Shown here piece by piece: positions 6,755 to 13,259 of a stretch of DNA of 64,000 nt. Each line of letters opens with the position of its first letter. Position 1 is the first letter of the stretch. A model generated the notes under the pieces. That model had not been told where the DNA came from. It ran no database searches and saw only the letters and a program-made list of their open reading frames with translations. The DNA is from Anthoceros angustus. Its lineage: Eukaryota; Plantae; Anthocerotophyta. The DNA is taken from assembly GCA_010909165.1 (NCBI GenBank), contig MU008178.1, positions 942,369-1,006,368 of the forward strand, given 5' to 3'. Position numbers and translations under genes: made by a program.

Positions 6755-6860
6755 AGAAACAAGAACAAGTGTATCATAGTCCACTTGGATGGAATTTCTC
6801 CTATCATGGGACTGGGTACTTGGCTACTAAGGGCATCCACTCCCTCTAGGCACCTCATCT
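6755..6860 (-). mobile_element. Diverged 3' end of a dispersed non-LTR-like repeat family
   Basis: TGTATCATAGTCCACTTGGA...TCATGGGACT.GGTACTT...AAGGGCATCCAC matches 63891-64000 and the reverse complement of 43400-43520. Confidence 0.55.
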
Positions 6861-7045
6861 CAGTACCGATCGAAACGCAGGAAGTACATAAATATTCCGC
6901 CTGTTGCTTCGCCATGACCATCAAAAGCATCCTGTGACGGCCCTGATGCATTGGAGTAAGCACCGCGCTTGTACAACTCCACTAGATTTTGCCTGATCTC
7001 AAGTACACCTCGTTACCGCCTAGACTGTGAAACCCAGACATGAGA

Positions 7046-10000
7046 TTATCCACGTTCTCGTTCCCGGGTCTCATTCCAATCAGCAGCCTGCATTCACCGC
7101 AGTAAAAGTAAAGCGCTCAGCATGACGAACAAGAGAGCTGAGATGCAGTGACGGGGGAGGTGACAAGCATGCACCTCCACCAGGCCATTCCTGTCGCTGT
7201 CAAACATGCGGAATAACAGGTCCAGCTCCCTCTGCGCACCAAACACACCCAGCCAGACATGTTTCAGCCAATCACCGGGCAGTGCAGTGGCTCTCATCAC
7301 CTTTCTCAGGGGCCGGAGAGAACATGTCTTACTTTGCGCATGAACCGGGAAGCCGGATGATCACGAATTATGCGACGGAACTCCTCTGGGGACACCGGTC
7401 TACCAGCGACTGACAACCCACAAGCCCAGCTCAAGCTACCACCGTCTCATTGCCATAATTCACGCAATACCCACGACGCACAAACACACACCTCCACGAG
7501 CTATCGACTGGAAGATCTCATCGATGTCGTCCAAGTTCTTGAGGAGGTCACGCAAAGCCGACAGTTCCTGAACGCGGAACATGTCTCGTTGTCAACCCAG
7601 CTTATGCGAAATAGCCCAAACACTGCTTACTACCGTACCTGTTTGCGCTTGATGTCAGCAAACTTGGGCAAAAAACGGTAGATGAAAACCAGGCCCACGC
7701 AAACTGTCAACGATGCCGTCGCAGCAATTCCCAACACCGCGTAGAAGACATCTGGATGGGCTTCCAACCCACTGACGGCAACCACAATGTCCACATCAAT
7801 ACCTTCACACAAATTTGTGAGATAAATAAGACAGGCAAAGGCTGCCAGTTTCATAGCCACACACCATTACCTTATAAGATTCATGCCGAAGAAGTTGGCG
7901 GGAACCGTTGCACTGCACACATCACTCCTTCAAATGCCAAATTCCTGAAAGAACATGCATGCATACTAGTCCAACAAAACTACTATGCTTCCAACAAACA
8001 AACATGCACAACAGCCAATAGGGAATCGCCACATACACAGCCAATGACACAGTTGCAATGCTTATCATCAAATTCATCCTCATGATGCGGTTGCGGGTTG
8101 CATCCAATCCCAGCTCCCAAACCTGTGATCAAAAGATATTATCCGCATGCCACTATACAAACCGTTGTATACAGTGCTGTAAAACAGTTGTCTGAAAACC
8201 TATTGAGCAACATACCTCTACAGCGGCATCCATATCCTTCTTTAGCTCTTCCAGAACACCCCCAGCATCATCAATCTGTTGTCAGAACGGACTTAATGGA
8301 CAAAGCCCGGGAGACTGTTTTCCCCCAATCTACCAAACCAAACACTGTAACTTTTGTGAATTACCTCTCGCAAGTAGGTAATAAGCATATCGGCAGCTGC
8401 CTGTCGTATCTTTCTCTCGTGGCCCTCACGCTCCTCTAAAGTCGCCATGTTGGCCATCTCTGCAACATTTTGCACCCGCGTCTTTTCAGTAAACGTTTCT
8501 CAACACAACTGGTTATGTCTTCACAATTACGTTTCTCTTGCAGTTCCAGCCATCCAGGACAAGCTGAGAATGGTACCTGGCCCTGGAACGGAACACAAGG
8601 CCTCCAGAATGTCATCGCTGCTTAGGACCTGGTACATGACACACAGGGTACCTCAGGGTCAGCAACACAGTAAACAGGTGTCAACGCCACAACGCTGACA
8701 GGGTTTGAATATCCAGGATGAGAGCTAACGCCTCTTCATGAACTAGGAACCACAAGTCTCAACTACTAGGTTGACCTGGTCCATGGCATCGTGGATGTCT
8801 CGCACATCATGCTCCACCTCCGTAATCGCACGCTTCAGTGGAAGCAACCTCTGCAGCCTGCAATCAGGTCCGGGAACTCATCATTGGTTAACAGGAATTA
8901 CGACATTCAGAACAAATAATGGTCTACCTTCCTGACTTGGGAGTTTGCAGGCATGCAGTCCAATTGACATTACCCGCCCATGTTGACATCATTCGTGAGC
9001 TCCTCAAGCATTTTCTCCCCGACAACCTTCAGTCTTTCAACATACAAGACATCAACACAAACACACACAAAATGACACAGATGAGTGGAGGGATCAAGCA
9101 GTTTTCCAGGCTTACCTTTCCACCTTTTGGTGAAAGTATTTGCTGGTCTCTTCTAGTAGGCATTCAATGATCCTGAGGTGGAACGGCATTGGCTCCAATG
9201 GTGCAGGAGGCATAACGTTGGCCTGCTCTGCAATGACTGAGGCAAAGGCTTGTTTTGCTCTGCACAAACATCCCACCAAGATTATGTACAAGCACTGGGG
9301 CATTTCTCCAGGTCTGTAATGTCCAATGTCCATAACCATCCACCACCTCAAGCAGTTGATCGCACCTTTCCAGTGTTTCAGGATTCCGTAGCTGTGTCTC
9401 GAGGTCTGCACCGTCCGACAAAATGGGATTCAATCCTCGAAACTTTGAGGTACTGCTAACACGAACATTTTGTGTCACCTTTTCCACTAAAAAACCCTAA
9501 AGACTTGCAAGCTATGCTACTGTCTAGCCTTGAGATCACAGTTGATGCCACCTACATGTGTTACTCAGTATCGATAGAAGATGACAACGAAAGAAAGAAA
9601 GAAAGAACGAAAGACCTCTGCAACAAGCTACCAACCACACTGATTTTATGTCAAGAAGTACCGGGGTCGAGATGCATCGAACAGCAAGGCATGGTCCCGA
9701 CTAACTAGAGCCCTGACGTTCTCCAGCCTCATAATCACCTGGGTTTCACGGCACCACCATCAGTGCAAGCGCGGTCACATCACAAACAATTAACCTCTGC
9801 AACAGATCAACAAACAGGCCACCTTGAAGTTCTGTACTGCAATGGTAGCACGCTTCGGGATGAACGAACTGCTGACCAGCAAATCCAAGTCTCGGGGATG
9901 AATGCCCTGCACAAGGCGTGGGTCAGCTATGCCGAGAGAGAAGGGAAAACGAACCAGTCCTTTGTCATCTTATGTGATGAATTACCAGATCTACAGAGCT

Positions 10001-10504
10001 GACAAGTCGTGGATTGCAACTGCCGTTGCTGTCGATGTCTATCACGGAATATTTGGTGCCCACGTCCAATAGAGTGTGCTCGAAGTCGTTGAGCTTTTTC
10101 TTGCGTTCCCCATTTTGTTCGTCATCATCCTCTCCGCCCGATCTGTCGTTGCTCATCCAGCGTCTCGGGATGGACACAGGCGTTTGTCCATGTGCCTTCT
10201 CCGCAATTCGCAAGACATAGTGCACTGTTCCAAAAACACTTCGTCCAGCTCCTGGAAAAGCTGGAGCAGCATCCTTCAGCAGAGTGTAGTCAGCTGAGAT
10301 ACAACCTGAACTCTGACTAGGCCAGAACGACGCCCTCTCGTGCGCCCAGCGGTCCTGAGTGTAACATGTAAGGCATCTCGACGCTGAGCCAGGTTGCTGT
10401 CTTCTGCCAACGGAGAAGAGTTCCTCGGGATTGCACCATGACAGGAGCCTCAACGCACGCAAACTTCTGCCACTACGAGCCTTCTCACGCAACACGGATC
10501 TCAT
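7046..10504 (-). CDS. MRS2: MRS2/CorA-family Mg2+ channel with probable N-terminal organellar transit peptide and C-terminal EF-hand extension, multi-exon
   Basis: Exons give GIHPRDLDLL, PMPFHLRIIECLLEE, LQRLLPLKR, LDATRNRIMRMNL, the signature ANFFGMNL (~7873-7905) and TM2. Four further in-frame exons follow (7567-7492, 7409-7333, 7231-7175, 7087-7046), ending in TAA. N-terminus is Arg/Ser-rich. Confidence 0.9.
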
Positions 10505-10739
10505 CGTCGCAGAAACTGTCTGCCAAAAACTCGTGCCTCATGACAAGCTTGCACCCACAAACAGCGCATCCGAGAACTTGAGGATTTCGCACACCGGCCC
10601 GAAACGACCTCCAACTGCCGAGGGCATCTCGCTGATGCGATCCGACCAGGACGGAAGACTCACCCGTCCCGGCGAACTCTGCTCCAAGGTCTCGCTAATC
10701 GAAGACGGACTGGCGCACCAATGGATGGTTGCTACTGGC

Positions 10740-13259
10740 CTAAGCGTATTCCCCGGAGCCAGCTAATTGATTGACCGTCCGATAGACACGGAACCCTCGA
10801 AGCTCGTCCAGTAGAAGGGTGTGCGTAGTACGCCAAGCACGACAAGCGTTATGGAGGCCTGGAAAGTGGAAGAAGACGACCAACTGGACACAGTTGTACC
10901 ACAGAAATCTCTGCACCCCGCTTTCATGAGCCCATTGAAAGGGCCTGAACAGGAACATGTAAAAGGTGGCAACATTCAGAACCATGAAAGCTGCTCCCAT
11001 GAGGAAGTACGCCAAGCCTCCCCACCTCTTTCCTGCATGGGTGTGCAGGAAAGCTATGTAGAAAGGGACAGTAAAGTATCTGAACTCTACCAGAGGGGCA
11101 GGAATCAGGGCCGCTGCCACTCCTAGAACGAAGACCAGAACCCATAGTCTGCTCTTCGTCTTCCCTGCAGCACAAGAGAGAATATAAGGAACCGCATCTC
11201 AGAAAAAGCTCCTTTCAGCTGATTCGATTTGCGCCAGCTTACCAAGGTGATGGGTGATGGCACTCCACGACAAGACGTAGGCAGGAATCAACAGATACTT
11301 GACACTCCAGTGTGCGCCAAACAACTTCTTCCATATGTAAAAGGTGTAGTGCCGATTGTCAGCCAATAGATATGGATGTGCATAGCTGCAGAGAAAAAGT
11401 GACACCCAGTATTAACTAGAGCAGCTGAGCCCTACCATTCTACCTGCCCCAACTGCAAAAACGTGATGCAGGAAGGTGATCAAAGGTTACGTGAAGAAGT
11501 GAACCGAACACAAGGCTGCAACACATGCCAAAGTGCAACAAAAATAGGACTTGCTGCTCCATCCATGCTTCAGTCCTCCCGGAAAGAGAATGTATACAGG
11601 TGTAAGAACCGTTGCTGTCATCAGGCCAAAATACAGGAGCTGTGGGAAGTGCGGTGATACTTTGTGAGCTTCTTTTGCACCTGCAAAATGACAGAAGATC
11701 GGTTACTGTGCTGCAAGAGTAAAGCAAGACCCCGAAGGTGTCCAGGGTTTAACAATCTAGCCAAGAGTACAGACAGCCCCCACCAGGACACTTACCAACA
11801 ACAATGCCTCCATTATAGATGACATATACTATGAAGGATGCTATGACGGCCACCAGTGGAAAGAAGTTCAGAAAGACTTCGTTCCTCTTCAGCCATGTTA
11901 GCCGTGCCATACACCATGCCTCCAAGACTAACTCTGCAAGAAAATGAGTGTTCAAGGGACTTGCAAAGATCCAGTTTTTGAGTTGACCAATACGAGTGTT
12001 ACCCACCTTCAACTTCTCTGGCCAAGCTCTTTTCAGAAATTGCGTGCACCACAAACTGGCCTGATGAGGACAATGAAACCTTTGACTCAAGTGATTCTGC
12101 TCTTCTTCTTCTCAATCTGGCAGAGGCTACGGGGACATTCAACACGCTGGGCAGGGGCTCAATGCTGGGAACCACCTCGCCTTCCGCCTTTGCAGTTGGT
12201 GAGATATCAAGCATGTCTAGCAGACCCGTACAAGTTGCAAATACTACCCAGACAACATTTGTTTGTCTAAATATAATGGCAATGGCTCCAAGCTGCACAA
12301 GCCACTGGACTCTTTAGTCACTGCAGAGCAAAGGAGACACCACACGATTACAGCTGCACAAGTCATGCCACTCTTCTCTCCTCTAGCACAGAACTAACCT
12401 CCATGGAAATCATGGTGGAGGGGATAGCAACTCCAGACCACCCACCAGCGCACTGACCCAAAACGATCTTCGAAGAGAAGCCAAGTACATGGCCATAACA
12501 GCGGTGGTCGAGCCAACATCAGTGTAGTACAGGAACATGAAGAACCACTGGAGAGGATATAACGCCATCACCACAGCTTTCGCAGATGCTCTCCAACTAC
12601 ATATTCCAGGTTCAATCTGCTTTACAATCTTCTGGAATAGAATACAGCAAACCAAACCTAGAAGAACATTCACTGAGCGAAGCACAGCTGAAGAACACAG
12701 TGCCGGCAAATTCACAGCCATATTCGTCCACCAAGCCAGAGGCAGAACAGTTGCTGCGAATCCCAAGGAGAAAATGTACCTGCTAGAGGACACCCTCATT
12801 AACAAGCAATCCTGGAGACTCCGAGCAGAACAATTACTAAGATAATCACATAATTTTACAAGAGAGTGGTAGAGGGGAATACAAGCCAGGGAAGGTGGTG
12901 ATCATGGGATCCCAGCTCCAAATTTCCCCCCTACAATACCGCTGCGCTTGCGGAATATGGAAAATTTCGTCCTGTGAAGCACCAACCACTTGTCAGAGTG
13001 ATCCTAAACCACTAGGGAAGCTCCTCCAAGTTGCAAAGAGCTCGTAAGTCGTAACTAACAGATGGCAGCAAAATCAAAAGATGGCGGCGAAATCGTTGTT
13101 CGAAACTGTTTCACGAACCATGTACGGCTCTGGGACGACAAGGTTGACAAGCACGGCGGGTACCAAACAGACAACAACAGGCACCAGGATCAGCGCGAAG
13201 GCTGCAATCCATGAACGATGCGATGGACCAATCCTGCACGCATCCCTCATCATTTTCAT
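10740..13259 (-). CDS. ALG10: Dol-P-Glc:Glc2Man9GlcNAc2-PP-Dol alpha-1,2-glucosyltransferase (ALG10/DIE2), multi-exon; 3' end uncertain
   Basis: [93 protein letters not shown]...QRFLW. Confidence 0.93.

Follow-up and report, generated by a model that had tools for sequence, protein, structure and literature searches.

In Anthoceros angustus, a channel gene of the MRS2/CorA family continues in frame past its second transmembrane helix (TM2) into a C-terminal pair of EF-hands, and this fusion is old and not peculiar to the A. angustus genome. It was found in a 64,000-nucleotide stretch of contig MU008178.1, called the window here, to which all gene coordinates refer. The EF-hand fusion is an ancient, real variant of a known channel family and is apparently undescribed; a literature search that covered few subscription papers found no paper describing or testing an MRS2/CorA EF-hand fusion. 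What is already known is the channel family itself, the clade (through its Marchantia orthologue) in one phylogeny, and automatic Pfam EF-hand tags on some members. The reading favored here, at a probability of about 0.5, is that the protein is an organellar, probably mitochondrial Mg2+ channel in which the second EF-hand senses matrix Ca2+ and tunes gating.

Gene structure and transcript support

The gene lies on the minus strand at 7046-10504 and has 17 coding exons that encode 590 aa without an internal stop; all of its introns are GT-AG and measure 71-209 nt. The model rests on frame, GT-AG introns and contig joints. Its exon set was defined from joints in transcript-like contigs of the same organism and three related organisms, where the RNA status of the four runs is a guess and the contigs themselves are without introns. 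The window gene was queried exon by exon and its joined translation was compared only locally with fetched proteins, while structure models and profile searches used natural orthologues rather than the window protein.

Exon 1 (9986-10504; frame and joints) encodes an Arg/Ser-rich, putatively presequence-like N-terminus, a variable linker and the start of the alpha/beta domain. Exons 2 (9823-9906) and 3 (9662-9738), both placed by frame and alignment to human MRS2, carry HPRDL with R178 (human R116) and E207 (human E138), respectively. Frame and joints support exon 4 (9366-9452), which is a variable insert, exon 5 (9116-9259), which holds the PFHLRIIE helix and belongs to the helical domain, and exon 8 (8577-8628); exon 6 (8974-9033) was placed by frame, and exon 7 (8776-8857) by frame and an alignment in which E337 and D341 correspond to human E243 and D247. 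The stalk helix begins in exon 9 (8365-8459; frame, joints and orthologue model), E410 (human E312) lies in exon 10 (8216-8275; frame, joints and alignment), and exon 11 (8037-8122; alignment) contains the pore rings D427, R430, M434 and N437 (human D329, R332, M336 and N339) together with TM1. The GMN selectivity motif at 7887-7879 falls within exon 12, which is only 42 nt long (7871-7912; frame and joints), and exon 13 (7639-7771; frame, joints and orthologue model) encodes the loop, TM2 and the basic start of the TM2 extension. A contig joint sets the start of the TM2 exon at 7771, which corrects the longer ORF that starts near 7800.

Four exons make up the tail. Exon 14 (7492-7567; joints, conservation and orthologue model) encodes a conserved acidic linker helix (LRDLL..DD.D.I) and the entering helix of pseudo-EF-hand 1, and exon 15 (7333-7409; joints, tail profile and orthologue model) the ligand-less loop and exiting helix of EF-hand 1. 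Frame and joints define exon 16 (7175-7231), with the entering helix of EF-hand 2 and loop positions 1-9 (loop from 7201), and exon 17 (7046-7087), with loop positions 10-12 (Asp12 at 7081-7079), the exiting helix and the stop. The tail introns of 71, 82, 101 and 87 nt are GT-AG with phases 0, 1, 0 and 0; these exons, phases and the encoded peptide had been predicted and are confirmed by frame and contig joints. A transcript check of the four junctions had also been proposed, and in transcript-like contigs the joints are present in the same organism and in two to three relatives: all four tail junctions occur in a same-organism contig (run X1) whose listed pieces are free of mismatches, the 7231/7333 junction is also found in two of the three related organisms, and the other three junctions in every one of them.

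A transcript-like contig reaches beyond exon 1 to about 10708, and the start of the MRS2 transcript falls at about 10708-10806. Very close upstream, on the same strand, is the 3' end of a DIE2/ALG10 glucosyltransferase gene (10743-11600, minus). In X1 the 3' UTR of the MRS2 gene runs to about 6526, and relatives differ here. Many loose ends of unrelated contigs from all four runs fall at 6780-6880 and suggest that this part of the 3' UTR contains a short, dispersed repeat. From 4443 downward, also on the minus strand, is the start of a PDR/ABCG-type ABC transporter-like gene with a GPPNAGKTT motif; Pfam on the first exon alone of this gene gave no confirmation.

In all four runs there are contigs that retain intron 11 (7913-8036), and the sole contig of organism B retains it too. 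No spliced joint was found for it among the contig rows listed, and contigs break at both intron ends. This intron adjoins the 42-nt GMN exon, has a purine-rich acceptor and is also present in Diphasiastrum. Read-through leads to a stop after 486 aa, upstream of the GMN motif, TM2 and the EF-hands, and its retention is possibly a case of conserved unproductive splicing. Retention of intron 13 (7568-7638) would give a tail-less channel through a stop two codons past exon 13; the one loose end within this intron (run X7) may be pre-mRNA noise.

Channel core and EF-hand tail

Window hydropathy and the AF2 and Foldseek results for Diphasiastrum give an N-terminal alpha/beta/alpha domain, a long stalk helix and two C-terminal TM helices. 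The best Foldseek matches of the AF2 model of the Diphasiastrum orthologue (pLDDT 79) are human and Chaetomium Mrs2. In the family profile, the region as far as TM2 aligns with human MRS2 (E 4e-46) and Chaetomium Mrs2 (2e-37), and the part past TM2 aligns with EF-hand proteins. Pfam MRS2-like (PF22099) is above its gathering score in orthologues 50-55% identical to the window model; searches with single window exons gave no match to it. The GMN motif, at aa 458-460, is invariant in all 31 members. In alignment, the window protein retains the equivalents of human pore residues D329, R332, M336, N339 and T346 as well as the interfacial site-3 acids E138, E243, D247 and E312 (window E207, E337, D341 and E410). 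Most of these residues are strongly conserved in the clade, with M336 and T346 variable. The retention of GMN and of the pore and interfacial residues makes a functional divalent-cation (Mg2+) channel likely. The partner of human R116, E291, and most acids of the second soluble site (site 2) are absent from the window protein. The N-termini of members are Arg-rich and acid-poor.

The tail of about 85 aa after TM2 consists of an acidic helix and two EF-hands, the first a pseudo-EF-hand and the second near-canonical. The claim that an MRS2/CorA channel is fused to a degenerate and a canonical EF-hand is borne out by the frame, by the fit of the EF-hand 2 loop (about aa 569-581) to PROSITE PS00018 and by the match of the tail profile to two consecutive calmodulin EF-hands (E 2e-10); MICU2 and NCL-type clusters were also among the tail matches. 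The Diphasiastrum orthologue clears Pfam EF-hand cut-offs, and Pfam on single window exons gave weak EF-hand matches for exon 16 only. In the Diphasiastrum AF2 model, TM2 runs as one helix into R-x-x-D-L-x-x-L-R-D-L-L, which is followed by two helix-loop-helix units. The helices are also present in a tail-only model (pLDDT 69), and fold searches with this tail-only model returned no clear EF-hand match. The position of the tail on the side of the soluble domain, part of the original prediction, is supported by the report that the C-terminus of MRS2 TM2 lies in the matrix (bioRxiv 2023.08.12.553106).

EF-hand 1 has no ligands at positions 1, 3 and 5 in any land-plant member. In EF-hand 2, ligands 1, 3, 5 and 12 are intact in 23 of the 31 members, and Glu is found at position 9 in 26 and at position 12 in 27 of them. 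The EF-hand 2 region is 47-65% identical to land-plant orthologues and TM2 14-42%. Gly6 of the loop is replaced by Arg in half of the land-plant sequences, and several trebouxiophyte members have lost the loop ligands and kept the tail; Picochlorum-type sequences have ligand-less loops. The best-conserved tail residues are those of the acidic linker helix and not those of the loop, as R505, D508, L512, D514, L516, H518, D520 and D523 are kept in 30-33 of 35 members. Judged by these residues, EF-hand 1 would be structural and EF-hand 2 is a predicted Ca2+ binder in most members. Asp in place of Glu at EF-hand position 12 lowers the preference for Ca2+, and Asp12 in the window gene probably weakens it here. 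However, Asp12 is nearly private to the window gene and not a family trait; position 12 is Glu in all ten land-plant orthologues. This undercuts the earlier argument that Asp12 marks a mixed Mg2+/Ca2+ sensor.

Distribution and age of the fusion

A DNA pattern of the GMN region matched metagenome loci with the same tail, and profiles from these gave the remaining members. The same pattern had no match in viral contigs and, in GTDB, found tail-less bacterial proteins with the exception of one eukaryote-like fragment (L144). Among the exon searches, exon 1 had no homologue, exon 5 found nothing in the Atlas and metagenomes, and the TM2 exon found repeat-rich junk only among 1.84 billion representatives.

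Algal members come from Chlorella, Micractinium, Auxenochlorella, Picochlorum, Helicosporidium, Bryopsis, Caulerpa, Monoraphidium and Klebsormidium, and land-plant members from Marchantia, Physcomitrium (two genes), Diphasiastrum, Ceratopteris, Adiantum, and fern-like and moss-like transcripts. Identity to the window model is 49-55% among the land-plant members, and the tail is present in every one that was aligned. A profile made from chlorophyte tails only scored the window tail at 51 bits, compared with at most 8.5 for shuffles, and a homologous tail is also found in a long-branched eukaryotic protein (P0011, 47 bits). Proteins from the haptophyte side carry a tail that is about as long, and in one of them the loop is canonical; homology is not claimed for the tails of P0055 and P0075, whose scores with the green tail profile equal or barely exceed those of shuffles. 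In the Atlas, models of MRS2 clusters from diatoms and haptophytes can be aligned over the tail region. All of these observations are leads only.

Gene structures agree across this range. Diphasiastrum has 15 of 16 intron positions and phases in common with the window gene, including all four tail introns, and Klebsormidium has seven of eight introns in common with it, three of them in the tail. Fern transcript contigs encode the full fusion, and the Marchantia orthologue is a single intronless ORF with the tail (L156/L157, 2001-3830). Because Diphasiastrum and the window gene have 16 introns and Klebsormidium has 8, the intronless state of the Marchantia gene suggests replacement by a processed copy. 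In a channel-core tree of this clade and bacteria, built without human, yeast or angiosperm MRS2 and not resolved at its base, the window gene groups with Diphasiastrum, ferns and one other transcript (support 98/91). Taken with the intron match, this placement suggests an affinity to vascular seed-free plants, probably lycophytes.

The original prediction also raised the possibility of a lineage missing from seed plants. Its positive side holds, as seed-free plants and algae carry the tail. No seed-plant member was found among the best 8000 candidates in each profile search, limited searches that missed paralogues too. Such an absence is weak on its own, and it agrees with the description of plant MRS2 'Clade III' by Ishfaq et al. 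2021 (PMC8733655) as a clade of genes with 6-18 exons from which angiosperms are missing. Mapoly0032s0166, listed there as MpMRS2, is the Marchantia orthologue P0063.

Proposed mechanism, alternatives and known systems

Starting from the splicing, architecture, conservation and residue identities observed, a scheme can be proposed for pentamer formation, location, ion binding, coupling and gating direction. The protein would belong to an old clade of the green lineage and act as a pentameric MRS2-type Mg2+ channel, with the mitochondrial inner membrane as its most likely location. TM2 would extend as a helix to the EF-hand pair on the matrix side, and five such pairs would therefore ring the neck of the funnel. 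EF-hand 1 would have a structural role and EF-hand 2 would take up matrix Ca2+ in most members, with the Ca2+-driven change relayed through the TM2 extension and acidic helix until it reaches the stalk and Arg/Asp gate. The analogy with human MRS2 gives a very slight lean toward Ca2+ closing rather than opening the channel. The wider proposal is that Ca2+ directly gates a mitochondrial Mrs2 of green algae and seed-free plants through the channel's own EF-hand, that this Mrs2 links matrix Ca2+ to Mg2+ uptake, and that it was lost towards flowering plants and may occur in haptophytes and diatoms. This proposal is tentative, with a somewhat less than even chance of being right.

In the best-surviving alternative, the EF-hand fold of the tail serves as a structural clamp or as a module for binding a partner; the acidic helix would pack on the stalk or a partner, with metal binding either vestigial or constitutive. 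The main evidence for this is that some trebouxiophytes, with ligand-less Picochlorum-type loops, kept the tail and that the linker helix is its most conserved part, above some loop ligands; the lack of ligands in EF-hand 1 points the same way. However, across the range from chlorophytes to ferns, most members have retained acidic or amide residues at loop positions 1, 3, 5, 9 and 12. This pattern suggests that metal binding is under selection, and a solely structural tail is considered unlikely, if still a serious contender.

It is improbable that the tail instead works in feedback, sensing Mg2+ (or both Mg2+ and Ca2+) and closing the channel at high matrix Mg2+. Asp12 in the window gene would fit such a sensor, and the prevalent Glu9 is reminiscent of the mixed Mg2+/Ca2+ site of parvalbumin. 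Additionally, since the human site-2 acids and E291 are not retained, another feedback element could be needed. However, Glu12 throughout the land-plant orthologues argues against this idea, and the interfacial site-3 residues are still there.

The same sensor-channel could reside in the chloroplast envelope or another membrane instead of mitochondria. A review places plant MRS2/MGT proteins in many membranes, and Chlamydomonas Cre50.g761497, listed in the 'MRS2' set of PMC8733655, is described in another paper as an MGT10 homologue needed for photosynthesis. However, the same table has separate MGT10 genes for Marchantia and Physcomitrium, the pore-side sequence is like that of human and fungal Mrs2, and the N-termini are Arg-rich, all of which makes a non-mitochondrial location very doubtful. 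Finally, that the fusion is a gene-model artefact with transcripts ending after TM2 is scarcely credible, as the intron 13 stop and the X7 loose end in that intron stand against spliced joints in four runs, the intronless Marchantia ORF, full-length fern transcript contigs and common tail introns, and the joints, the Marchantia ORF and the fern contigs rule out a tail-less transcript as the main form.

The gating of CorA-fold channels is by cations bound between soluble domains, and to our knowledge direct Ca2+ gating by a fused EF-hand has not been described for any of them. If the preferred reading of Ca2+ sensing by EF-hand 2 is true, gating by a channel's own fused EF-hand would be a new regulatory mode for CorA-fold channels. 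It would also bear on plant mitochondrial Mg2+ uptake, for which one review names only the anther-specific MGT5 of Arabidopsis. Human MRS2 is inactivated by Ca2+, this inactivation persists after mutation of interfacial site 3, and its sensor has not yet been found (bioRxiv 2023.08.12.553106). The EF-hand clade therefore makes the question testable, as its channels carry a candidate Ca2+ sensor that is discrete, can be deleted and comes in Glu12, Asp12 and ligand-less natural variants, and Marchantia, which is genetically tractable, has an intronless member.

Human MRS2 (8TS1/8TUL/8IP3) and Chaetomium Mrs2 (8Q8P) have the same fold, two-TM topology and GMN motif as the window clade and share with it the D329/R332/N339 pore rings and site-3 acids. 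They differ in that profile matches to them stop at or just past TM2 with no EF-hand match, and the R116-E291 bridge and soluble site-2 acids of human MRS2 are not retained in the window protein. Angiosperm MRS2/MGT1-10 and Chlamydomonas MRS4 belong to the same superfamily and share Mg2+ transport and GMN, but they are other clades, set apart here by their descriptions, in which no EF-hand is mentioned. For Clade III, which is linked to the window clade by table naming, PMC8733655 never mentions an EF-hand and tests no member. Bacterial CorA and the FGMNLxSGLE-type bacterial proteins share fold and GMN with the window clade, but in the bacterial GMN-channel ORFs listed for the GMN-region pattern, about 40-70 aa follow GMN and show no EF pattern. 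The small CorA-like proteins with FGMNLxSGLE, found in cyanobacteria, Planctomycetota, Bacteroidota and others, have the loop motif of the window clade and are tail-less. EF-hand modules attached or bound to a transport protein are found in TPK1, TPC1, NCL, LETM1, aralar/citrin and MICU1/2 on MCU. However, those pores are unrelated, whereas in the window clade the EF-hand pair follows TM2 of a CorA-fold channel.
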